From Octopus bimaculoides (Eukaryota), in contig NC_069000.1 of NCBI RefSeq assembly GCF_001194135.2, forward strand, positions 6,309,244 through 6,373,243: a DNA stretch of 64,000 nucleotides. The letters are read 5' to 3'. Shown here one piece after another: positions 7,327 through 60,746 of this stretch (within the stretch, counting starts at the first letter, position 1; every line of letters begins with the position of its first letter). The translations under genes and the position numbers were made by a program. The notes beneath the pieces were generated by a model. That model did not search any database. It had not been told where the DNA came from and was given only the letters and a program-made list of their open reading frames with translations.

Positions 7327-7525
7327 GTTCATATAAAAGAAAAAGAGCCCTGGGTAGTTGACGGCAGTAAGGAAAATGGAGACTATATGACAAAGACTGT
7401 TCAAGGAAAGACCTCTGCAGTAATTAGAAACTTAGAGTCTAATACATACTATGAGTTCCAGGTCGTAGCTACTAATAAAGTTGGAAACTCAAATCCACGG
7501 CCTGTGATTATTGTGACAAAAAAAG
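7327..7525 (+). CDS. NCAM: Exon, second half of FN3-2 (VHIKEKEPW...IRNLESNTYYEFQVVATNKVG...VTKK)
   Basis: acacag acceptor, G|gtaagc donor, FN3 Tyr-corner motif, phase 0 to 1. Confidence 0.93.
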
Positions 7526-8095: not shown

Positions 8096-8122
8096 ATTCA
8101 CCTGATAGTATTGAAGAATCTG
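8096..8122 (+). CDS. NCAM: 27-nt symmetric microexon (DSPDSIEES)
   Basis: T-rich tract + tatag acceptor, G|gtaaga donor, open in phase 1-1. Confidence 0.7.
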
Positions 8123-10397
8123 GTAAGAACTATAACACAATTGAGGGAATTATAAATTCTTCTTCAAACCATTCTTTACCTCTCTTGCTAAATTTAATGA
8201 GCACTTGTTCCTGCAGGCATTTCCTTCTGGTACCTGAAAAAAAAAAAATATAAAGATTTATCGTTGGTTTATATATTCTCCTTAAGTTTTTATCAAATGT
8301 TGTACTTTTAATCTATTTCTCTTCTCTCAAAGGTCTTTTGGGCATTTTATTTATTTATACATTATTATTATTATTATTATTATTAAGGAAGTGGGCTGGA
8401 ATGACAGAATGCATAGCAGTATTTCTTCTGACTCTTTAGATTTTGAGTTCACATCTCACTCAGATCAACTTTGCCTTTCATCTTTCTAGTCTTTTTTAAA
8501 TAAACCAGTTGAGGACTGGAGTTGAAGTAATAAATCCCACTACAAAAATAAAAATAAAAAATCAGGCGTTGCGTCTATTGTGGAAAGAATCGTTGTCTAT
8601 CATTTAAATGATTGATCAGTTGATAGTTAATAAGTTTTAAAGGAACTTTACCTTCTAATACAGTAATATTAAACGTTGTTGTTGTTGTTGGTGCTGCTGC
8701 TAGCTGGCATGATTATGTATTAGAACTGTTTAACTATAAACATAATTGCCTCCTCTTAAACTTCTAAGCTAATTTGGTGCTCCATTGATGGTATTCTATC
8801 TTGATTTGCTGTTAGTCAAATGTCAGCCTTGTCTAGGTTGGTTGGTTGGTTGGTTGGTATGCCAATGATGGAATATAGAGTGGACATATCCCAAAATCAC
8901 AGGAACTCTCTATTGCTTAGCCAATGGTGGAACGTAGGGTATGAGGTCCACTGAAGACACTCTGATTGTCAACCAAAGCCTCACACTGAATGCCTTACCA
9001 TTTTTCAAAGTCAGTCTTTGATGTTTGGACAGGATTCTTATTTAGAAGAATTTAAACTCTAGTCACTGTCTTCAGTTCCCAATTGTTTTTTTTTTTTTTT
9101 TTTAGATAAACTGATACATATCAAAACAGCTTTTTCTAGTATATTGTAATCTTGTTTGCCCTGTCACAATGTCTATGAGCAGTTTTCAAACCTGTTGAAA
9201 ACAAAGAGAATGATTTATTTTAAGTGAATCCACCTTGCAGATTAAAGCTGCAAAATACATAAATAAGTCCAATGTAGATAGTGGAAAACTGATGAGAGTA
9301 CTACTCCTTACTTTGCATTTCAAGTTCTGTTTATTAATATCTCAACTAGGTATCTTTATATCTCAGCTCATTTTTATTTAGAAATTTACCTTTTTATATA
9401 AATATTTATCCTTTCTGTAAGAATGGCTTCAGGGACACAAAAAATTATGGAACTGAAGTAGAACTCTTGCACATTTCAGTGTTGCCTAAATAATTGTTAA
9501 CAAAAAGCATATTAGAATTGGTTTTTAATTAACCCATAAAGCGCTGGGATTTGCACTTACATAGCAAGGACTGCTGAGCACATTTTATGAAAATGAGACT
9601 ACCATGCAAACATAAAAAAAGACAACAAAAAACATATCTTCTTAGTATATAATGGTGGCAAGTTTTACATCATCTGAAAAGTCATTAGTTGAACTATTAG
9701 TCCTCTTGCATTCTGGTGGGGGGTATTGGAGCGTTTGAGTGACATTAGACCCCAACAAACGCCCATAAATTAAATGCATCTATCTGGGCCACGATCGTGG
9801 CCCGTTGCGCTTTATGTGTTAAGCCTAATAAGATTATTAGGCTTACTGACTTGCTGTTTATTTAGATAATTTTTTTACTGAATTTTAAATAACAGCTTTG
9901 TTCTTTTTATAGAGTAAACTTTAAAATAATTTTTAATTTGCGCAATTTCTTCTATANNNNNNNNNNNNNNATATATATATATATATATAAAAAAAGAAAA
10001 AAATATTTCGCTTAAGTGAATCTTGTTTTGCATACTGTGTGGAATTGTCCTTTTTTTTTTTTTTAACATTTTTTTTTTTTAATGATGAATATTAATTAGA
10101 AATTTTTTCACTGCTGCTTACTCTTACTTCAAACCATGTCATCATGCTTGTGTTACGTGTTTTATTAAATGTTGTCTTATTTGTATTTTTTTTTTTTCTC
10201 TCTTTAAATGAACCCATTTTTATTGACATTCCAATAATTATATTAAATTTAAATTTAAGGTGGCATACTTAATTCAAAAGTTTTCTTCATTAAATAGTTT
10301 TCATTTATTTTCCACTATTTCTAAACAACCCAATTGATTGACTGAAGTCTACAATTTATTTTAGAAATACACTTGTTTGTATATTTTTACTCTGCAG

Positions 10398-10427
10398 AAT
10401 ATCCAGATGAATATGTAGATGAATATG
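10398..10427 (+). CDS. NCAM: 30-nt symmetric microexon (EYPDEYVDEY)
   Basis: tttttactctgcag acceptor, G|gtaagc donor, open in phase 1-1. Confidence 0.75.
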
Positions 10428-12818
10428 GTAAGCTCACTGTGCACCTTACAAACACCCCAGATAATATACCCCTCCGACCACCTTGTTCATCTAAAGTTGC
10501 TTTAAGCACTCCACATAATTTGGCTGTTATTACCAATATGAAGCACCAGAAATACCTAGAACTGGTGGTGCTCAATATTTATTGGGGAAGATTTTAAGCT
10601 AAATGCATAAAAAGTTTTAACATTTTTCAGTTTTATTTAACAGCTAAATTGGAATCACTGAATTTTTAAAAAAAATTTTATGTTCTCATTTTACAGCAAT
10701 AGAAACATTTATTTCATGTATTTATTGGTTTAATCTTTTCTTTTTTTTAATCTTTCCTCCTTTCTCTGTGTGTTTGTGTATTGCTAAATGTTTCTATACT
10801 TACCTTTTTTTTCTAGATATATAATTCTTGATATTGGCTCTCCTACTGGTTCCAAGAAAGGACTTTGTTGTTTTATTTTATATTTTTTTAAGGAAACCCC
10901 TCGAGTAATTCTTTCCCCATTACTTGCAATAGACTCTACTTGACTGCTTCAAGTAAAACTGAACTTTCTTGCAATTTGCATGTCTGAATGTGCAAGGTTA
11001 TAGCAACTGACCTAACATTTTAATCATATTTTGCTCCAGATAAGTGCTAGAGTAAATCAACTTAAGATCAGAGCTGTTTCAGATATTAGTGTCTTGGATT
11101 ATATAATGTCCAGAGGGCTGTTTTCAGAAACATTTCAATGGATTTTGTTTCTATTACAACATTGGGGATGTGATTTAAGGGAGATTTGGCTGTTGTTTCT
11201 AACAGGTTGAACTATCATCCCTTATTTAAACAGTTGTACCTTTTGGTCAGAAAGATGGTACCGAGTGGCCATCAGTAGGAATATGCAGCACTTAGTGAAG
11301 CATTTTATTTTTGATATACAATAAATGTAAAAGTGATCTTCTGATTGGTTTGGTTACTTGGTTAATATTGTTAGTGTGTGTCTTCCACAAACATTTGTCC
11401 TCTTAACATAAACTTCACGGTAAACTCAGTGTGACTTGACATTGAAGTTGAGGCTCTTTAAAATACATGTACAGACCCCACTTGTTACAGATGCCACATG
11501 ATGGTAGAGAACTGTAGATTTGATTGTAATGTGAATCATTAAATCATTTCAATATACCTGCACTCTATGAAGCACAGTTCAGTGGCATTACATGAACTCG
11601 AACCATTCAGCTTCTTGTCTGATTTCCTTTGTATGCATTTGGTTATTTGCTGCTTCTTTAAATAAATTACACACTCGTGAAATCAGAAGTTTGTAATATA
11701 CGCTTCTCAACATGGTGAGATAAACCAGCTTCTTTACAATGTCCCACATTATTTTGAACTTTCACCTCCATTATATCACATTGCATGGATCATCCCTTGT
11801 TCATTCATAGTATATCATTTTATCAACATATCTTTATTAGATCTGCCTGACTCTCATGAGAAATCATCAACTAAGAATTTTAAAGGCTCTTGCATGAGAT
11901 CCCAGTTTATATAACAATCACTCTTTGTTTGTCATGTGCATAGTCCAGTATATAACTTTTTCCTAGTCTTCTACATTGTGCCACAAATCAAAATTCCTAA
12001 ACTCCTTGAACAGTAGATTCTTGATTGTTTTCTTGACAGTTTTTCAACTGCTTCATTAGTTCGAATGCTGTGTTATCCAACACTTCTCTCCCAATACGAT
12101 GGTGGTGTTTTGGTGAAGCTTCTTAGAAACAAATGCATCAACATCTTGAATGTATCATCTTCTGACAGCATCCAGTGACTCTTTATTCGAGTGTTTCTTG
12201 CATATTTTTATGTTGGCATTTCTTCTCCAATGACTTTTCTTTCATATTTCACTTTTGTCTCAATATCTTTGTGTTGTGTGTGTGTATCGTAGTGAGAGGT
12301 GTGGTTAATTAAAGCAGTTTGATTGTCTTATCTTTTTTGGTATTAGTTATTCCATGATGACATTAGTGCTGTTCAGTGTTTTCATTCTCTCTTCAATAAT
12401 CATATAAAATGTGATGGTAAAATTTTTTTTTTTTAATAATGGCCATAACTATACCTGGAAATATTATAGAAAAAAAATAATAATCTTCACTTAGATAACC
12501 TAATTAAACCATTATCAGATTTAACTTTTAAGCCAAATTTCATGTTTGTTTGATAGGGTTTTTTTAAATAAAATATTTTATAGCTAATTATTTCTTATTA
12601 ATTATCCTGCTGTCCATTACTTACAATAACAACCATTCATTATGTAAAGTGTTCATTCATCGACATTCCATTACTTTTCACTGACAACAATTCACTTTTG
12701 GTTCTGCAATATTTCAACTCTGCTTTGTACTGTCGACTAGTATATGTGTGTCATCTTCACTCTGATCTCTCCAATCATAAATGAAATAAAGATGCCCCTG
12801 GCTCATCAATCATTTCAG

Positions 12819-12881
12819 ATCCATCACCTGCTGACACAGCATCAAACCCGAAAACTAATATTTACAAGGCTACAACCAAAG
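12819..12881 (+). CDS. NCAM: 63-nt symmetric exon (DPSPADTASNPKTNIYKATTK), with a possible in-frame upstream acceptor at 12792
   Basis: catttcag acceptor, G|gttagt donor (same hexamer as the donor at 3765), open in phase 1-1, P/S/T-rich. Confidence 0.65.
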
Positions 12882-18023: not shown

Positions 18024-18062
18024 GAAATATTTTAGATCCTGGACAAACATCGAAATCCATAA
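18024..18062 (+). CDS. Candidate 39-nt (or 48-nt, to 18071) symmetric exon (GNILDPGQTSKSI)
   Basis: Strong acceptor tttttcctttcag and open in phase 1, but both donors (A|gtgatt) are weak. Confidence 0.35.
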
Positions 18063-19236
18063 GTGATTCAAGTGATTCTTTTTTTCTTTCTTTTTTTTTT
18101 GTTAATCTTGCCATTAAGTCTTTCTGTACTAATTTTCATTTATAGCTTTTGAATTGACAAAACTTTTCCATAAATTAATATATTTATCTCTTTCAAAACT
18201 TAATAATCTTTCTATTTTAATGATTCTTTGCACAGTAAGGAAGGAGGTTACAAGTAACATTTAGAATAAAACTTTAGTTTAAGCATGTCAAAATTGAAAT
18301 ACATATATATTTATATATGTATATATATATATACTGATTGGTCATTACAATTTTCAAATATAATGGATTTTTTCTTTTTAAAGCCTATATAAATTTAATG
18401 GTTTTTCTCTCAATATAAATCTCCAATTTGTTCACTGATTTCATTGTCTATTGTACATTAGTTTCTGCTTAAGATGGAGGCATGTTTTAAAACCTGCAAT
18501 TAACCATCATAAGGATGAATTGAGCTGTTTTTTAATTAATCATTATAAATCTTAGTGATTTAATGTGGCAAGCTGGCAGAATCGTTAGCGTGCTGGACAA
18601 AATGCCAAGCATTTCTTTTGGCACTTTAAGTTCAAATTCTGCCAAGGTCAATTTTACCTATGATCCTTCCAAGATTGTTAAAATGAGTACCTGTCAAGTA
18701 CTGGCGTTGGTGTAATGCGCGCACGCACACATTCTTCAGATTTGCTGGCCTTGTGCCAAAATAAGAAGTTTTTGACAACAGCACAAGTATTTGTCAGCAT
18801 TTCCTTATGGTTTTATGTTTGTATATATTTTTTTAATGCTAATAATGCATTTCAAATATTACTATATAAATAAGGATAAGATCCATATTTTAAATAGCAA
18901 TCAAATCAAGTGACAGCATGAAAGTAAAAAAGAAACTATATAGGTTATATAATAATTATAAAAATTTATAAATAAGGGTCTCGAAGAGATACTACCATGC
19001 TTGAAATAGCAATCAAAACCTGACTCTAAAACCACATCATGTATTCAAAATACAGCACAAGGTGAAAGGACAAATAGACAAATAAAACCAGAGGGTGTGA
19101 AATTATCCAATTTTTACTGGGATTGAATTGTTCGACTAAAGGTGCATAGCTGCAGTCAAATGACTTAAACCAGTAAAAGAATTAATCTACACACACACAC
19201 AACCAGTATTTTGTGATAATGGTATTGAAAGCAAAA

Positions 19237-19453
19237 GGGCGGCGAACTGGCAGAATCGTTAGCACGCTAGGCGAAATGCTTAGCGGTATTTCATGTGTCG
19301 TTGCATTCTGAGTTCAAACTCCACCAAGGTCGACTTTGCCTTTCATCCTTTCGGGGTCGATTAAATAAGTGCCAGTTACGCACTGGGGTCGATATAATCG
19401 ACTTGACTTTGTTTGTCCCCTCTATGTTTAGCCCCCTGTGGGCAATAAAGAAA
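19237..19453 (+). mobile_element. SINE (family B)
   Basis: ggcggcgaactggcagaatcgttagc head and ctgagttcaaa B-box. Copies near 8388, 18565, 25142, 29404, 30921, 31068, 45279 (minus), 54993, 55208 and 55460. Confidence 0.85.
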
Positions 19454-21779: not shown

Positions 21780-21902
21780 GTCCATCTTTTTCCACTATGA
21801 GCCCTTCTACTAAGAGCCCTACTAGTATCAGTGACGTAAGCTCTAGCTCAACACGTGACACTACTGTCACTGTGACCAATGTTGTAACTTCAGTGACCAC
21901 TG
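21780..21902 (+). CDS. NCAM: 123-nt symmetric Ser/Thr-rich (mucin-like) stalk exon
   Basis: tttttgtacag acceptor, G|gtgaaa donor, GPSFSTMSPSTKSPTSISDVSSSSTRDTTVTVTNVVTSVTT in phase 1-1. Confidence 0.8.
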
Positions 21903-25141: not shown

Positions 25142-25365
25142 GGCAGTGAGCTGGTAGAATTGTTAGCATGCCAGGTAAAATGCCTAGTGGTATTTCATCT
25201 GTCCTTACATTTTTGTGTTCAAATTCTAGTATGGTCAACTTTACCTTTCATCCTTTCAGAGCTGATAAAATAAGTTCCAGTGAAGCACTGGGGGTTGGTG
25301 TAAACAACTGACCCCATTCCCTCAAAGTTGCTTGCCTTGTGTCCACATTTGAAACTTATTATTAT
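25142..25365 (+). mobile_element. SINE (family B)
   Basis: Similar to 19237, with (ATT)n tail. Confidence 0.8.
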
Positions 25366-33557: not shown

Positions 33558-33664
33558 TGGACACGGGTAGTCGAATAACGGATTCCACTGCATCTTTCAT
33601 CAGCAATTCTCACCTGTTAATGGCAGTGAATGCCTTCTTGTGTTGTCTGCTGGCACTGCTCTGA
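33558..33664 (+). CDS. NCAM: Alternative terminal exon encoding a GPI-anchor signal (VDTGSRITDSTASFISNSHLLMAVNAFLCCLLALL*)
   Basis: tttctgttcttttcag acceptor in phase 1. Small residues, a polar spacer and a 16-aa hydrophobic tail end exactly at TGA. Confidence 0.85.
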
Positions 33665-33730: not shown

Positions 33731-34132
33731 NNNNNNNNNNNNNNNNNNNNNNNNNNNNNNNNNNNNNNNNNNNNNNNNNNNNNNNNNNNNNNNNNNNNNN
33801 NNNNNNNNNNNNNNNNNNNNNNNNNNNNNNNNNNNNNNNNNNNNNNNNNNNNNNNNNNNNNNNNNNNNNNNNNNNNNNNNNNNNNNNNNNNNNNNNNNNN
33901 NNNNNNNNNNNNNNNNNNNNNNNNNNNNNNNNNNNNNNNNNNNNNNNNNNNNNNNNNNNNNNNNNNNNNNNNNNNNNNNNNNNNNNNNNNNNNNNNNNNN
34001 NNNNNNNNNNNNNNNNNNNNNNNNNNNNNNNNNNNNNNNNNNNNNNNNNNNNNNNNNNNNNNNNNNNNNNNNNNNNNNNNNNNNNNNNNNNNNNNNNNNN
34101 NNNNNNNNNNNNNNNNNNNNNNNNNNNNNNNN
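33731..34132. other. Assembly gap (402 N) directly after the GPI exon
   Basis: N run. Other gaps: 482-625, 9957-9970, 24953-24977, 36966-36975, 37854-37863, 41084-41093, 50005-50097. Confidence 1.
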
Positions 34133-36150: not shown

Positions 36151-36952
36151 ATAGGAAAATGAAAAATGATATGGCAGAATGCTAAACTGGAAGCATATTT
36201 TAATAAAGATTTCTCTAACCGGCTTTCGTTGCGAAGCAAATTTTCAAGAAGAGGGAGAATGAAAATGTTTTTTACAAAGTACAAAATGAAGGAAATAATA
36301 TATAAAAAAAATAATATATATAAAAATAAACATACCAATACATTATATTGTCTTTGAGCTTTTGAAGTTCAGTGGTAATTCATGTATATAATGGTTGGAA
36401 AAATAAGGATGCATGAGAATTGAGAGCTGTGTTAGGTTTAAAAAAAGGGTTAAAAGTTTGTGTTAAGCAGGAAGTGTGGTGTTAAAACAGGAAGTGTGTG
36501 TAAGGGGAGACAAATGTTCTTAGTTGGAGTTATGAACTCTTTTTTTCAACAGGAAGTTTGTCTGTTCCTAGGAGTTCATAACTCCAACTAAAAACATTTG
36601 TCTCCCCTTACACACACTTCCTGTTTTGACACCACACTTCCTGCTTAACACAAACTTTTAACCCTTTTTTTTAAACCTAACACTGCTCTCAATTCTCATG
36701 CATCCTTATTTTTCCAACCATTATATACATGAATTACCATTGAACTTCAAAAGCTCAAAGACAATATAATGTATTGGTATGTTTATTTTTTTAATATATT
36801 ATTTTCTTCATTTTGTACTTCCTTGTAAAAAACATTTTCATTCTCCCTCTTCTTGAAAATTTGCTTCGCAACGAAAGCCGGTTTGAGAAATCTTTATTAG
36901 AATATGCTTCCAGTTTAGCATTCTGCCTTATTATTATTTTTCATTTTCCTAT
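36151..36952. repeat. Long inverted repeat: arms 36151-36539 and 36572-36952 with a 32-nt spacer
   Basis: Direct reverse-complement comparison shows about 6 substitutions and a few small indels. Confidence 0.9.
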
Positions 36953-37346
36953 TATTTCTCCACGTNNNNNNNNNNCATTTGTCTCCCCTTACACACACTT
37001 CCTGTTTTGACACCACACTTCCTGCTTAACACAAACTTTTAACCCTTTTTTTTAAACCTAACACTGCTCTCAATTCTCATGCATCCTTATTTTTCCAACC
37101 ATTATATACATGAATTACCATTGAACTTCAAAAGCTCAAAGACAATATAATGTATTGGTATGTTTATTTTTTTAATATATTATTTTCTTCATTTTGTACT
37201 TCCTTGTAAAAAACATTTTCATTCTCCCTCTTCTTGAAAATTTGCTTCGCAACGAAAGCCGGTTTGAGAAATCTTTATTAGAATATGCTTCCAGTTTAGC
37301 ATTCTGCCTTATTATTATTTTTCATTTTCCTATTATTTCTCCACGT
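36595..37346 (+). repeat. Identical 371-bp direct duplication flanking a 10-N gap (probable assembly artefact)
   Basis: 36595-36965 equals 36976-37346, separated only by Ns. Confidence 0.85.
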
Positions 37347-43340: not shown

Positions 43341-44343
43341 ACTGGTATTTGGTTTGGAACATATTTTTTTTTATCTTTGTTTCCCCCCCAACTGCACTCC
43401 CTAATGTGTCCCCTCCTCTCCTTATTTTTCATCTCGACTCTTTAGCCTTCAGATTACTCTGTCAAATGTAATGCTTATTTATTCTCATTGCTTTGAATTA
43501 ATCATGCACTGTCTCATAGCTTTGAGATTTTGATGGAGTGTTTGTTTATTTTTAGAAGGACATTGTAGGGTAGGTGTGAGGAGCTGGATCTGGCTGGTTT
43601 GAACACAAAACAGGTGGAATATTTTGGCTGGATATGGCTATTTTGAATAGTTAAGGATTATGGTTGTAATAGTATGTAAGCCACCAAATGTTAAAGAAGG
43701 TTGCTTCACAACCACATGGTCTCTGGTTCAACCTCACTGCATGTCAACTTCAGAGAGTGTCATTTTCTATAATCTGCTAAGGATTATAGAAAAATAAGGG
43801 GACAACTTATACCTTGTGGGTGAAACTGGATTATTAGAAAATTAGCTTATTGGACAGGATGTATTCATTGAGCCAATGCTATGACCTTGTCACACTCTGT
43901 CGTACTGATTTTGTCTGAAGATTGTATTATGGCTACATGTCTATGGAATACTCTACCATTTATTGAACAATTTAATCCTCACCATCAAAACATGATACAT
44001 CTGTGTCCGTCTTTCCCATCCTGGTGTCTGTGATTAGGCTGTTGTTTCTTGCAGATTGAGCTTTTCCACTCACCATTGGCGACTTAGTCATATATTTGGT
44101 TTTAATACGCACATGCACGTTTTAAATTCAATTATAACTTTAAATCCTCTTCCTCCTCCTCATCGTTTTTAATGGCCACTTTTCTATGCTGGCATGAGTC
44201 AGCAAAAATTACTGAGGCAGAATTTCTACAACTTGGATAGTCTTCCTGCTGCCAATCCTCACCTGTTTCCAAGTAAGGTAAAATTCTTCATCACTGTTTG
44301 TCTCTGACCACCACTTGACTGAGGTCAATTTGTTTGACTAAAC

Positions 44344-47762: not shown

Positions 47763-48780
47763 CAGCATGAGTCACCAAACTTTTTTTCACGGTGAACCAG
47801 ATAACTGACAGAATGATGAGCATTGGCGGCATAACCATTTTGTTCAATACAATATAGTGAATACACAAAAAGAATAAAATCAACCAATATATTTATTTAC
47901 CAAAACGTTATCAAAGGTGGCAGTGTTAGCAATAAGCTAGTTGTATCACACCTAGTGCGCACGTATCTGAATCTCTCAAACTAAGCAGCAAAAAAAGGTT
48001 GGTGAGATTTGTGAAACTGGTGTTTTAGCTTTGGAGATATAATCAATATTTGCTTTGTATGTCTGCAAACCTCATCAGTCAATCTTGTTTGATGTTCTAA
48101 CTTCACATCCTTCATTTTCGAAAATGTTTGCTCACAGACACAAGTTGTTCCAAACACTGATGCCATCCATACCAGCGGCGAATGAACTCTTTTCAAATTT
48201 ATTTCTACATCCAGACGGGTCTCCTAATACATTCTTCTGAATGGCACTTTGTATCTCCTTTTTGGGATGCATATTCAACTGTTTCTTTGCAGGTGTGTCC
48301 CATTATTTCCTCAGTAAAGCATAACTTGAAGATGTGAACAGGCTTACTTTCATTTTCCTTTTATGTTCTTTATAATTGCAGGTTCTAATTTAAATACCTG
48401 GTCCTGGCATGTCTGGAAATTTTTCTCTATTATACACAAAGTCTTCAGTTTTCTATCCTTTTCTTATGGAGGCCAATAAGAAATTCAATTGGTCCACTAT
48501 CACTCTCTATTTTCTGTGCTTTGTCCAAGCACACCACAACCGTTATCTCTAGGATTTGCTGGCACCTCTTCATAAGCATTGCCTGCGTCATCTTTATCTG
48601 AACCTTGACCATCATTTGGGACATGCAAAACAATTTCAAATTCTTGGTTTTGGAATGCTTACATACTTCAATGATGTTCAAAGTTTCTTCTGTGTCCCTC
48701 TCGATGTTAAGACTCTCTTTGCTATTATTATATGGGAAATGAAACGAAGCAGTTATAAAAATGTTTTTATTTAGCAATTA
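47763..48780 (-). mobile_element. Decayed hAT transposon (Buster/SPIN-like) fragment
   Basis: Minus ORF 47981-48196 reads SVFGTTCVCEQTFSKMK...RLTDE (hAT dimerisation-domain motif). A TIR-like cagcatgagtcaccaaact lies at 47763. The other end was not found. Confidence 0.7.
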
Positions 48781-52305: not shown

Positions 52306-53411
52306 AATATATATATATGTTAAACGATGATGACAACGATATATGTAAAATGGCAAGGGTATGGCTGTGTGGTAATGAAGTCTGCTTCCCGGCCACACGG
52401 TTCCTGGTTCAGTCCCGCTGCATGAAACCTTGGGCAAGTGTCTCCTTCTACTATAGCCTCGGACTGTAGCCTCAATCCTTGTAAATGGATCTGGTAGATG
52501 GAAACTGAAAGAAACTTTTCATGTGTATACATCTCCATAACTTAGCTATTCAACAAAAGCGAGTCTCATCTGCTATGATCTATGTATGTACTTTTTTGCA
52601 GTATTTCGTGTTGTAACATGACATCCATATTAAGTTGGATAGATAGATATGTAAGTATGTATATGTAATCAAACCTCAAAGACACTGGTGTTAGTCTACG
52701 TTGATAAGACTTGTATTTAGTAAAATTGATTAAAAGAATGCAGTGCAATCGTCTTTTGACATGGAAAATCCCACATTTCAGATTTTGGAGAGTCCTTTAG
52801 GGAAACTCTGTTGTTTCTTTTAAATTTCAGTCTTGTCCCTTTTCCCATGAGGAAGCACTCTGAAATGTTTGGGTTTTTTCTACTCCTCTCCGCAAGTTCA
52901 CTGTGTTGTTTTCATCGATTTTAGGATATTTATAGATGTGAGTGTGTGTGTGTACACAATGTATATGATATATGTGAATATAGCTGTGTGGTTAGAAAGC
53001 TTGCTTCTCAGCCACAGAGTTTTGGGTTCAATCGCACTGTTTGGCACCTTGGGCAAGTGTCTTCTGTTATAGCCTTAGGCTGACCGAAGCCTTGTGATTG
53101 AATATGGTTGGCAGAAGTTTCCACCGTGTGTGTGAAAGCGTGCCCCCTAACAGAGAGGAGCGAAAGCATACATACAGAAACCAGCTCTTTCTCTATTGGC
53201 AAGAAATCTTGAAATAAAACTAGAAAATGACACACACAAACGAAGGGCTTTAGTACTACTTCCACCTGCCAATTTTACTGAAGGTGTTCATTGGCCAACT
53301 TGAAGCTAAAGTAGACAATCTATGGCCAAGGCTCCATGTGGTGAGATAGAACCTGAAACCCTGTGGTTATGAGCCAAACTTTGCTATCACATCACTATAC
53401 TTGTTTCTATA

Positions 53412-54992: not shown

Positions 54993-55420
54993 GAGCCGGC
55001 AGAATCGTTGGCATGCCAAATGAAATGCTTAGCTGTATTTCACTCATCGCGACATTCTGAGCTCAAATTCCGTTATGGTTGACTTTGCCTTTCATTGTTT
55101 CAGGGCCAATAAATTAGGGGTCGATGTAATCAACTAGTCCCCTCCTCCACCACCAAATTTCAGGCCTTGTGCCTATATTAGAAGGGATTATTATTATTAT
55201 TATTAATGCAGTGAGCTGGCAGAATTGTTAGCACGCTGGGCAAAATGCTTAGCTCCATTTCATCTGGGTTCAAATGTTCCGGGTTCAAATTCTGTTGGGA
55301 TCAACTTTGCCTTTTGTCTTTTCGGGGTCTATAAACTAAGTATCAGTTGAGTACTGGGGTCAATGTAATTGACTTACCTCTGCTGTTCAAACTTGCCGGC
55401 CTTGTGCCAAAATTTGAAAC

Positions 55421-55459
<39 letters not shown>

Positions 55460-55665
55460 GGCAGTGAGCTGGCAGAATCCTTAGCATGCTGAGGCAAAAT
55501 GTTTAGTTGCATTTCGTCCGTCTTCACGTTCTGAGTTCAAATTCTGCCGAGGTCGACTGTGCCTGTCATCCTTTTGGGGGTTGATAAATAAAGTACTGGC
55601 ATTGATGTGATTGCCTTACCCCCTCCCCACAAATTTCAGGCCTTGTGCCTATAGCAGAAAAGATT
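54993..55665 (+). mobile_element. Three head-to-tail family B SINEs
   Basis: Starts at 54993, 55208 and 55460, separated by (ATT)n tails. Confidence 0.85.
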
Positions 55666-57800: not shown

Positions 57801-58491
57801 TTGGATTCTTGTGGGATACTAACATTCAGGTCGGATCCTGTTTCTTCCCCTTCACCTTTTTGCAGTGGTCATTGACCTGTAGATGATCAGACTAGGTGTT
57901 TGCCACATTAGTGTCACTATTATCGAAGAAAGGTATGCAGATGTCAATGGCCTCAACCTACACACCACTACTCCCCTACTGATTAACAAATTAGATTATT
58001 ATTCATTATTGATCACTAAAGAAGTTTTAACATTACAACTTTTTTTTTTTTGTTTCACCCCAGCAAAACATTAGTAGTTGGTCTTTAATGCATCATGTCT
58101 CTGAATTACTAATTATTATACATTATTAATTTCTCATTAGTGGACACTTTAAAAGAATCAATTAATCTCTCTATCTGATAGTTCCCCTTCTAAAGAAAGG
58201 GTTTCATTCAAAACATTACAGTTCTTGTCTTCACATGGGATATGTATTCAGCCAAATTTCTAAACCATTATGTTATCTGCTTCGCTTACTCTAATCTCCA
58301 CATAATACAGTAATTAACATTTTCATTAAATAAAACTAATAAAGACACATCTAGTATGTTATTGAATGTCCCATATAAACCCAGTTTAGTTATTCCTGCT
58401 CATGTTAAATATTACTTATATTTATTTCAGATATATATTTTTTTATGTTACAACTCTAAATTACATCACAGTTGTGTACAAATACTCAACA

Positions 58492-59095
58492 TGGCTGTGT
58501 GGTAAGAAGCTTGCTTTCCAACCACATGGTTCTGGGTTCACTCCCACTGTATGGTACCTTGGGCAGGTGTCTTCTACTCAGACTAACCAAAGTTTTATGA
58601 ATGGATTTTGTAGCTGGAAACTGAAAGAAGCCCAGTGTGTGTGTGTGTATATATATCATCGTTGTTTAACATCTGTTTTCCATGCTGGCATCGGTTGGAT
58701 GGTTTGATCTGGCAGTGTTTCTACAGCTGGATGCCCTTCCTAACGCCAACCACTCAGAGAGTGTAGTGGGTGCCTTTTACATGCCACCAGCACGGGAGCC
58801 AGTCAGATGGACCTGACATCGAACATGTTCAGATGGTGCATTTTACGTGCCACCAGCATGGCAGCCATATATATATATGGGTGTGTGTCTGTCCCTTTAT
58901 TCTCTTTGTGTTTGACCCACCACTGCTTGACAACTGGTGTTGGTGTGTATACATTCCCATAACTTAGCAGTCTGGCAAAAGAGATTGATGTAGTAAGTAC
59001 CAGGTTTAAAATAAAAATAAGCCCTGGAGTTCATCCCCTCTTCAAGGCTGTACTACAGAATGGTCGCAGTCTAATGAGTGAAAAAAGAGAAAACA
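58492..59095 (+). mobile_element. Family C SINE with a family D repeat (~58655-58860) in its internal microsatellite
   Basis: The SINE head and tail flank the ggatgcccttcctaacgccaac-containing insert. Confidence 0.7.
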
Positions 59096-60529: not shown

Positions 60530-60746
60530 TAGAGAACAAGGAAGTTCCGTTAACTGCTGCTTCGACTGGAATCAGTTCCGGAGGAGTTGCTGGTTTGATA
60601 ATTGCGTTGATCTTAATTATCCTTATAATACTCGACTTGATTTGTTACTTCAAGTTTGAGAAAGGTGTTACAATGTTTTTGGTTAGCACCTGCAAGAAAG
60701 GGTCTTCTGCCAAGGACAAGTCCACAGATGTGGAGGCTGGTGCGAG
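60530..60746 (+). CDS. NCAM: Transmembrane and juxtamembrane exon (VENKEVPL...GGVAGLIIALILIILIILDLICYFKFEKGVTMFLVSTCKK...GA)
   Basis: tttctattttag acceptor in phase 1, AG|gtatgt donor in phase 2, hydrophobic helix with the NCAM-type D-x-x-C-Y-F motif. Confidence 0.92.

Follow-up and report, generated by a model that had tools for sequence, protein, structure and literature searches.

The 64,000-nucleotide stretch of Octopus bimaculoides DNA analysed here (RefSeq assembly GCF_001194135.2, contig NC_069000.1, positions 6,309,244 to 6,373,243 of the forward strand), referred to as the window, harbors part of a gene of the NCAM/apCAM/Fas2 family of neural adhesion molecules, and positions 10398-10427 are a genuine frame-preserving alternative exon of this gene. 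The exon comprises only 30 nt and encodes EYPDEYVDEY, a peptide that by its sequence resembles a tyrosine-sulfation site and that is placed in the stalk between the last extracellular domain and a glycosylphosphatidylinositol (GPI) anchor. We estimate a probability of about 50% that this exon, as a whole, equips the stalk with a splice-selected, sulfated and electrostatic patch. The features of the locus are compiled in Table 1.

In the window, the sequence ttgtatatttttactcTGCAG precedes the exon AATATCCAGATGAATATGTAGATGAATATG, which is followed by GTAAGCtc, the acceptor being ctcTGCAG and the donor G/GTAAGC. One extra G terminates both exons that may lie upstream, i.e., the second half of the second fibronectin type III domain (FN3-2; 7327-7525) and a cassette encoding DSPDSIEES (8096-8122). 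The microexon is therefore read as G/AA TAT CCA GAT GAA TAT GTA GAT GAA TAT G/, corresponding to EYPDEYVDEY, with phase 1 on entry and exit. With its canonical AG and GT dinucleotides, a length divisible by three and a phase fitting FN3-2, DSPDSIEES and both the GPI and the transmembrane (TM) exons, it has all properties of a cassette exon. The encoded peptide possesses five carboxylates, three tyrosines and no basic residue, and the GATGAATAT repeat occurs twice in its coding sequence (10406-10414 and 10418-10426; period 12 nt). A preliminary description of the locus was right to the base in this respect, as it had proposed a 30-nt exon with three tyrosines, each following a glutamate, a gatgaatat repeat and TGC at the 3' splice site. 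Over the six reading frames of the whole window, three or more (D/E)Y within ten residues are unique to the microexon, and, among 1685 open AG..GT phase-1 segments of 9-63 nt in the 53-kb intron, the microexon locus alone has at least two (D/E)Y.

Several other origins or functions of the segment were ruled out. No repeat family overlaps 10.0-10.8 kb, which excludes derivation from a transposable element or repeat; zero Rfam matches over the whole window exclude a structured RNA; the EY peptide has no second copy in the window, excluding a second similar, mutually exclusive exon; and an intracellular YxxPhi or SH2 motif is excluded by the extracellular position of the segment. An assembly gap of 14 N is located at 9957-9970, about 430 nt 5' of the microexon.

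With regard to the host gene, stop-to-stop frames on the plus strand of the window revealed exons for Ig and FN3 domains between 1.1 and 7.5 kb, together with one encoding a transmembrane segment near 60.5 kb. A rough concatenation of the exons identified "neural cell adhesion molecule 2" of O. bimaculoides (XP_052831195.1) with 96% identity, followed by the orthologues of O. sinensis and O. vulgaris (80-84%) and, at a greater distance, by proteins of decapod cephalopods (51-54%). A Pfam scan of isoform X9 (P0016) identified five I-set Ig and two fn3 domains, the last of which spans residues 618-707, and in an AlphaFold2 model of the same protein beta domains extend as far as residue 708. GPI- and TM-anchored isoforms originate from this one gene, the GPI exon being located 5' of the TM exon, and both are used in annotated isoforms. 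The host gene is a cephalopod member of the NCAM/apCAM/Fas2 family, and the NCAM-type neural adhesion host that had been proposed earlier was thus borne out by the RefSeq name, the five Ig and two FN3 domains and the GPI and TM anchors. The other lophotrochozoan NCAM-like proteins retrieved have the same layout of five Ig, two FN3 and a GPI or TM anchor, and the orthologous adhesion molecules Aplysia apCAM and Drosophila Fasciclin 2 likewise occur as GPI and TM isoforms generated by alternative splicing. The longest O. sinensis isoform of the orthologue spans 172 kb.

The clusters at 90% identity contained 12 RefSeq isoforms of O. bimaculoides and 13 of O. sinensis, which are highly variable in the region from FN3-2 to the anchor. 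EYPDEYVDEY is present in a single isoform of each species, X9 of O. bimaculoides (XP_052831200.1; one of 12) and X11 of O. sinensis (XP_036366941.1, P0028; one of 13). Both have 765 residues and the same order of elements, in which FN3-2 is followed by DSPDSIEES, EYPDEYVDEY and VDTGSRIT..LLALL, the latter representing the GPI signal. Joining of 7327-7525, 8096-8122, 10398-10427 and 33558-33664 yielded exactly the tail of X9, including the stop codon. All remaining annotated isoforms skip the microexon, a statement that refers to gene models and not to read counts. Occurrence in just 1/12 and 1/13 isoforms would also be in line with splicing noise or an annotation artefact without a role at the protein level. 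We regard this as very improbable, as two independently annotated species share the identical peptide and exon combination, an orthologous exon exists in a cuttlefish transcript assembly and a second cuttlefish annotation, and the exon preserves the frame, has consensus splice sites, is unique in the window and overlaps no repeat.

Candidate sulfation sites were determined by a script of our own (not Sulfinator) implementing the classical rules for tyrosylprotein sulfotransferase (TPST): an acidic residue at -1, at least three acidic and at most one basic residue within +/-5, turn-forming residues nearby, and neither cysteine nor an N-glycosylation sequon within +/-7. The three microexon tyrosines of P0016 (Y722, Y726 and Y730) pass all rules with Glu at -1, 5, 5 and 4 acidic neighbours, respectively, and no basic residue, cysteine or sequon. 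Only 4 of the 30 tyrosines of P0016 pass, and the only one outside the microexon lies within the folded Ig2 domain. As each tyrosine has Glu at -1 and four to five acidic residues within +/-5, tyrosine sulfation may be inferred, and we see roughly even odds that TPST modifies one to three of them.

The predicted structure of the stalk is compatible with such a modification. In the AlphaFold2 model of P0016, built on an alignment of 16 sequences, the mean predicted local distance difference test score (pLDDT) was 85.7, while residues 714-747 remained below 50 (means of 29-35 per block) and lacked secondary structure. The hydrophobic GPI signal is modelled as a helix spanning residues 747-764. 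EYPDEYVDEY is thus predicted to reside in a disordered stalk that faces the lumen or the cell exterior. By eye, the N-terminus of P0016 has a hydrophobic stretch resembling a signal peptide, which together with the five Ig and two FN3 domains places the stalk outside the cell, and the location of the peptide, after the final ectodomain module and before either type of anchor, indicates lumenal exposure of the tyrosines. The acidic tyrosine context and the extracellular placement assumed in the preliminary description are in agreement with the rule script, with the domain layout and with the predicted disorder of the stalk before the anchor. The peptide ends one residue before the sequence of the GPI exon. 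According to a rule of thumb for small residues, GPI attachment probably occurs near S740, which would therefore place the three tyrosines some 10-18 residues from the anchor.

Modification of tyrosines by sulfate has been demonstrated in molluscs (PMC6219549; PMC13485628). In the oyster, mass spectrometry detected CCK1 in mono- and di-sulfated form, and the ganglia express a TPST gene (PMC6219549); sulfated CCK peptides of Aplysia have likewise been verified by mass spectrometry (PMC13485628). A literature search yielded no paper linking sulfated tyrosine with cephalopods, and a full-text search, judged by titles and the beginnings of abstracts, yielded none evidently dealing with tyrosine sulfation of NCAM.

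Inclusion of the microexon would insert EYPDEYVDEY into the disordered juxtamembrane stalk next to the GPI anchor, and TPST may O-sulfate one to three of its tyrosines as the protein passes the trans-Golgi, which would introduce as many as three fixed negative charges. In DSPDSIEES plus EYPDEYVDEY, 9 of the 19 residues are acidic and none is basic; the two cassettes would hence constitute a 19-residue polyanion with nine carboxylates and up to three sulfates, and splicing would set whether or not the GPI-anchored protein bears an anionic patch. The role of this patch would most likely be electrostatic, providing a heparin-like docking site for basic patches of a partner in cis or in trans. Alternatively, it may make the stalk more rigid or keep it at a distance from the membrane. 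Docking of a basic surface, or action as a charged spacer, is suggested by analogy and is the more weakly inferred part of the model. The earlier proposal that splicing toggles a binding patch is not supported as such: both annotated octopus isoforms with the exon are GPI-anchored, and this and the estimated distance of about 10-18 residues from the anchor favor a membrane-proximal or cis arrangement over a distal site. A more specific version, in which a conserved, splice-selected sulfotyrosine or polyanion module of coleoid NCAM switches the GPI form between neutral and heparin-mimicking and thereby gates a partner with a basic patch, is a tentative and rather doubtful one. The protein's own Ig2 domain with the basic stretch WKHKLKK is a candidate partner of the anionic stalk. 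Residues ~154-166 of P0016, which belong to Ig2 and are encoded 5' of the window, contain WKHKLKKIITAGR, a possible cis partner that we note as a lead only; it presumably resembles the heparin-binding stretch KHKGRDVILKKDVR of vertebrate NCAM Ig2.

Octopus and cuttlefish represent two coleoid superorders that split long ago. The cuttlefish cluster comprised the NCAM of Acanthosepion pharaonis together with several assemblies of transcripts taken from Logan, which compiles assembled runs of public sequencing data. Here, an exon of 36 nt encoding EYPEEEVVLDED occupies the same position as the octopus microexon; it is carried by a transcript assembly (L001/P0004, SRR9970006) and by the A. pharaonis protein CAE1318100.1. 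The cuttlefish sequences show a homologous pair of cassettes. In P0004, the stalk has the order TKE, KPPGSYDEEDEEEEEEP, EYPEEEVVLDED and VDKID..GPI signal, and in the TM-containing isoform P0032 of A. pharaonis TKE is followed by KYPEEEVVIDEE. The cuttlefish exon is present in P0004 and absent from P0034-P0038, again as judged from assemblies and not from read counts. At the DNA level, the cuttlefish exon (GAA TAT CCA GAA GAG GAG GTT GTT TTA GAT GAA GAT) aligns to that of the octopus (GAA TAT CCA GAT GAA TAT GTA --- --- GAT GAA TAT), and both begin with GAATATCCAGA and end with GATGAA.AT. By this sequence comparison, the microexon is orthologous between octopus and cuttlefish. The first tyrosine (EYP) is common to both, 17 of the 29 residues of the cuttlefish stalk are acidic, and the upstream cuttlefish cassette contributes a second tyrosine in acidic context (GSYDEED). 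Judged by sequence, what is conserved would be the pronounced acidity of the peptide along with one tyrosine or more. With respect to the occurrence of the peptide in other molluscs, which the preliminary description had named as a check, an orthologous exon retaining the first tyrosine therefore exists in cuttlefish, but the other two tyrosines are replaced by Glu and Asp.

Outside the cephalopods, a search of a representative library with P0016 was dominated by matches to giant Ig-repeat proteins, and 18 NCAM-like matches were examined. None of these 18 representatives of other lineages has an EY cluster after FN3-2, which is weak evidence as one isoform per 50% cluster was visible. Within this limit, the earlier statement that no such module was known from NCAM, Fas2 or apCAM held.

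A number of observations weigh against sulfation of a binding patch. The second and third octopus tyrosines are exchanged for Glu and Asp in cuttlefish, and negative charge rather than tyrosine itself may be the conserved feature. When the cuttlefish exon is joined directly to FN3-2, a lysine precedes the tyrosine, which then fails the sulfation rules. P0182, a lophotrochozoan NCAM-like protein, has an acidic, Glu-rich repeat free of tyrosine in its GPI stalk; charge alone may therefore suffice. The 10/10 identity of the peptide between O. bimaculoides and O. sinensis is weak evidence for conservation, given an overall identity of about 84% between the two proteins. As the microexon occurs in only one annotated isoform per species, it may give rise to a minor form. 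The patch would also be very close to the membrane, a poor position for binding in trans. Finally, in a homologue search with vertebrate TPST2 as query, the best 120 of 1881 matches were all from vertebrates, and no Octopus TPST was among these 120.

Most of these points relate to the main rival, an unsulfated polyanionic spacer, whose carboxylates and length would act on orientation, membrane repulsion or packing in cis, with the tyrosines being incidental products of AT-rich codons (TAT, GAA and GAT). The low GC content of the genome (~33%), the Glu and Asp residues at two of the three tyrosine positions in the far more acidic cuttlefish stalk and the tyrosine-free insert of P0182 are what such a spacer predicts. 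Conversely, the conservation of EYP between octopus and cuttlefish and the additional acidic-context tyrosine in the upstream cuttlefish cassette would not be expected from incidental tyrosines, and three Glu-preceded tyrosines in a disordered lumenal segment would be strong TPST substrates by the classical rules. Exchange of tyrosine for Asp or Glu is expected as well if the tyrosine is normally sulfated. The cuttlefish differences fit a spacer equally well, and overall it explains the data almost as well as the sulfated patch; we consider it possible, albeit unlikely.

A further explanation concerns the membrane anchor. Instead of forming a ligand site, the insert might alter both the spacing and the charge from FN3-2 to the GPI attachment site and in this way tune GPI addition, sorting into membrane domains, or release by phospholipases or proteases. 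In both octopus annotations, the GPI exon is the sole anchor exon that accompanies the microexon, the cuttlefish assembly P0004 carrying the cassette is a GPI form too, and the end of the peptide is some 10 residues from the inferred attachment near S740. On the other hand, the orthologous exon of A. pharaonis is part of P0032, a model containing a TM segment, and other cassettes of quite different composition occur at the same position in the stalk. A role limited to anchoring or processing is improbable in our view.

With regard to splicing, the preliminary description had implied regulation as a neural microexon from the TGC at the 3' splice site. Microexons dependent on SRRM3/4 have been described to combine a strong 5' splice site with a bipartite enhancer, UCUC..UGC, that separates the pyrimidine tract from the AG (bioRxiv 10.1101/2024.09.17.613571). 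The acceptor CUCUGCAG (RNA ...uauuuuuaCUCUGCAG/) with the donor G/GUAAGC matches this type of signature, as a weak, single instance. Similar to SRRM3/4 (eMIC) microexons, the exon is short and symmetric, has UGC before the AG after a CU-rich element and a strong 5' splice site, and resides in a host of a neural family; unlike these, it is with 30 nt just above the usual 27 nt, and its pyrimidine tract abuts the UGC and is not located far upstream. Microexons are strictly defined as exons of up to 27 nt and by looser definitions of up to ~51 nt, so that the exon exceeds the former limit and is within the latter. The 8-mer CTCTGCAG occurs twice in the window with 0.96 copies expected, which is at chance level, the other copy being inside the FN3-2 exon. 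Elsewhere in the window, TGCAG recurs at one annotated acceptor, which belongs to the terminal exon of isoform X12. Control by Rbfox was ruled out, as no GCATG is found within 500 nt of the microexon. The text of a comparative splicing study including O. bimaculoides mentions neither NCAM nor UGC. Taken together, UGC next to the AG fits the SRRM3/4 pattern, but it is a single motif at chance frequency.

Inclusion may be governed by something other than a neural SRRM/eMIC switch and instead follow the GPI isoform or a tissue outside the nervous system. In vertebrate muscle NCAM, the MSD1 mini-exons accompany the GPI form. The pairing with the GPI exon in both octopus annotations, the chance frequency of CTCTGCAG, the lack of the Rbfox motif GCAUG within 500 nt and a length above the strict limit of 27 nt speak for such regulation. 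The combination of UGC at the AG after CUCU with a strong GUAAG donor, which is the published SRRM3/4 cis-signature, and the neural adhesion family of the host gene speak against it. We judge non-neural or anchor-linked regulation to have somewhat less than an even chance, and the GPI-only pairing in the octopus annotations cautions against assuming a neural switch.

Known systems provide precedents for single aspects of the putative sulfated patch. Vertebrate NCAM1 has small alternative exons, namely VASE (30 nt), MSD1 a/b/c and AAG, and a choice between GPI (exon 15) and TM forms. The octopus gene is alike in its five Ig and two FN3 domains, the position of the GPI exon 5' of the TM exon and the tiny frame-preserving extracellular cassettes. 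In contrast, VASE is inserted into Ig4 and MSD1 between the FN3 domains, both outside the stalk that follows FN3-2, and none of these small exons is known to encode an acidic tyrosine cluster. The octopus and cuttlefish sequences EYPDEY and EYPEEE are similar to the Y-P-E-D-D motif of fibrinogen gamma-prime, and the cephalopod EYP(D/E)E is close to ..DYYPEED.. of GPIb-alpha. In fibrinogen gamma-prime, alternative RNA processing adds an acidic tail that binds exosite II of thrombin (PMC8268464) and bears sulfotyrosines (PMC3919161), which by analogy would be a precedent for a splice-selected sulfotyrosine patch. It differs in that the tail is a C-terminal extension produced by intron retention and polyadenylation in a soluble plasma protein, and in that its sulfation is proven. 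GPIb-alpha possesses a flexible acidic stretch whose sulfotyrosines Tyr276, Tyr278 and Tyr279 are needed for binding to thrombin exosite II, the heparin site (PMC3919161). Like this protein, the N-termini of PSGL-1 and CCR5 are flexible acidic segments whose three clustered sulfotyrosines are indispensable for ligand binding; all three differ from the octopus stalk in being constitutive, in their membrane-distal or N-terminal position and in having known ligands. The GPI-anchored GPIHBP1 is described to capture a basic patch of lipoprotein lipase by a disordered polyanionic domain with a sulfated tyrosine (PMC6358717; PMC8319833; PMC11344153). This domain is N-terminal, constitutive and combined with an LU fold, whereas the octopus patch is C-terminal, adjacent to the anchor and optional.

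Table 1. Exons, splice signals and peptide features of the stalk region (positions in the window).
Feature	Position	Strand	Remarks
FN3-2 second half, last constitutive extracellular exon	7327..7525	+	ends AAA AAA G/, phase 1; tail ..PRPVIIVTKK
27-nt cassette DSPDSIEES	8096..8122	+	directly 5' of EY exon in both octopus isoforms carrying the EY exon
3' splice region of microexon	10370..10397	+	pyrimidine-rich tract cacttgtttgtatatttttactc; TGC 10393-10395; AG 10396-10397
Cassette microexon	10398..10427	+	30 nt; phase 1 both ends; EYPDEYVDEY; sequence AATATCCAGATGAATATGTAGATGAATATG
Peptide SIEESEYPDEYVDEYVDTGS			candidate TPST substrate, predicted from sequence
5' splice site GTAAGC	10428..10433	+	GT 10428-10429; exon-final G before donor
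63-nt stalk cassette DPSPADTASNPKTNIYKATTK	12819..12881	+	phase 1 both ends
48-nt stalk cassette GNILDPGQTSKSISDS	18024..18071	+	phase 1 both ends; final base A
123-nt Ser/Thr-rich stalk cassette GPSFSTMSPSTKSPTSISDVSSSSTRDTTVTVTNVVTSVTT	21780..21902	+	
GPI-signal terminal exon, coding part	33558..33664	+	VDTGSRITDSTASFISNSHLLMAVNAFLCCLLALL then stop; 3' partner of EY exon in X9 and X11
Alternative terminal exon of isoform X12	48382-48479		GSNLNTWSW...; GSNLNTWSWHVWKFFSIIHKVFSFLSFSYGGQ then stop
Transmembrane exon	60530..60746	+	(V/I)ENKEVPLTAASTGISSGGVAGLIIALILIILIILDLICYF...; (V/I)ENKEVPLT...; alternative anchor to GPI exon

Beyond the microexon, the FN3-2 donor, at least five cassettes and the GPI and TM acceptors are all in phase 1, forming a "phase-1 hub" that extends over 7525-60530 of the window. 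Since donor, cassettes and both anchor acceptors have the same phase, any combination will be in frame and the junction residue alone varies. This residue is set by the last base of the upstream exon, as seen in the change from V-ENKEV to I-ENKEV after the 18-kb cassette and from D to H in O. sinensis. The DSPDSIEES cassette holds an S-x-E motif (S-I-E), the consensus of the secretory-pathway kinase Fam20C, and its cuttlefish counterpart is KPPGSYDEEDEEEEEEP; together with the EY cassette it may form one composite anionic or modified module. The cassette at 21780-21902 is rich in Ser, Thr and Pro, appears mucin-like and occurs in GPI- as well as TM-anchored forms; it probably represents an O-glycosylation stalk. 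Its divergence between O. bimaculoides and O. sinensis is much greater than that of the EY exon.

Some of the annotated 3' ends are less clear. The X12 terminal exon has a TGCAG acceptor and lies opposite a minus-strand open reading frame of 110 amino acids (48445-48777) in what appears to be a degraded repeat. Exonisation of a fragment, with a truncated or secreted product, may account for it, as may annotation noise. In P0003 of O. vulgaris and P0032 and P0033 of A. pharaonis, the first part of the GPI exon runs into the TM exon (..LDTGSRITDSTASFNCNSHLLMAGECEENIALENKEVP..; ~33558-33640 plus 60530), which implies an internal donor within the GPI exon or a mis-joined gene model. A gap of 402 N (33731-34132) begins 67 nt past the stop codon of the GPI exon, leaving the 3' untranslated region of the GPI form incomplete in the assembly. 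At 36595-37346, a unit of 381 nt is present in two copies of 100% identity separated by a gap of 10 N (36966-36975). The pair is located within inverted repeats of 84-98% identity (36162-37319), and the duplication is probably a gap-closing or scaffolding artefact over a palindromic repeat. Much of the big intron is filled with dispersed short repeats, some of them resembling short interspersed elements with tRNA-like GGTTCA..CC boxes. Examples are located at 1798-1884, 43679-43765, 52360-52446, 52979-53065 and 58489-58575, and further dispersed repeats occur at 19244-19367, 25148-25271, 54993-55116 and 55467-55590. The intron also contains many (TA)n and (CA)n microsatellites, and no repeat touches the cassette exons. 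A search of transcript fragments with an 82-residue query (FN3-2 end, both cassettes and GPI signal) gave no match and only two word-sharing candidates.

The exon itself is already part of the RefSeq models, and small cassettes in the NCAM family as well as splice-selected sulfotyrosine tails are both of a known kind. The gain is incremental because the exon is annotated and the chemistry is not of a new type. The acidic tyrosine cassette within an NCAM-family stalk and its conservation among coleoids appear to be unreported, none being evident in our literature searches. Even without sulfation, the locus is a clean phase-1 hub, in which at least five cassettes and two anchors are freely combined within the stalk of one adhesion molecule. 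If the reading as a sulfated patch is true, no earlier case of a tyrosine-sulfation cassette subject to alternative splicing would be on record for an adhesion molecule of the Ig superfamily. An exon of 30 bases would then install a strong local negative patch on a synaptic adhesion molecule and couple the post-translational code of TPST to the splicing code, for which fibrinogen gamma-prime is the sole close precedent named here, and the gene would provide a concrete example of how cephalopods diversify their neural surface molecules.

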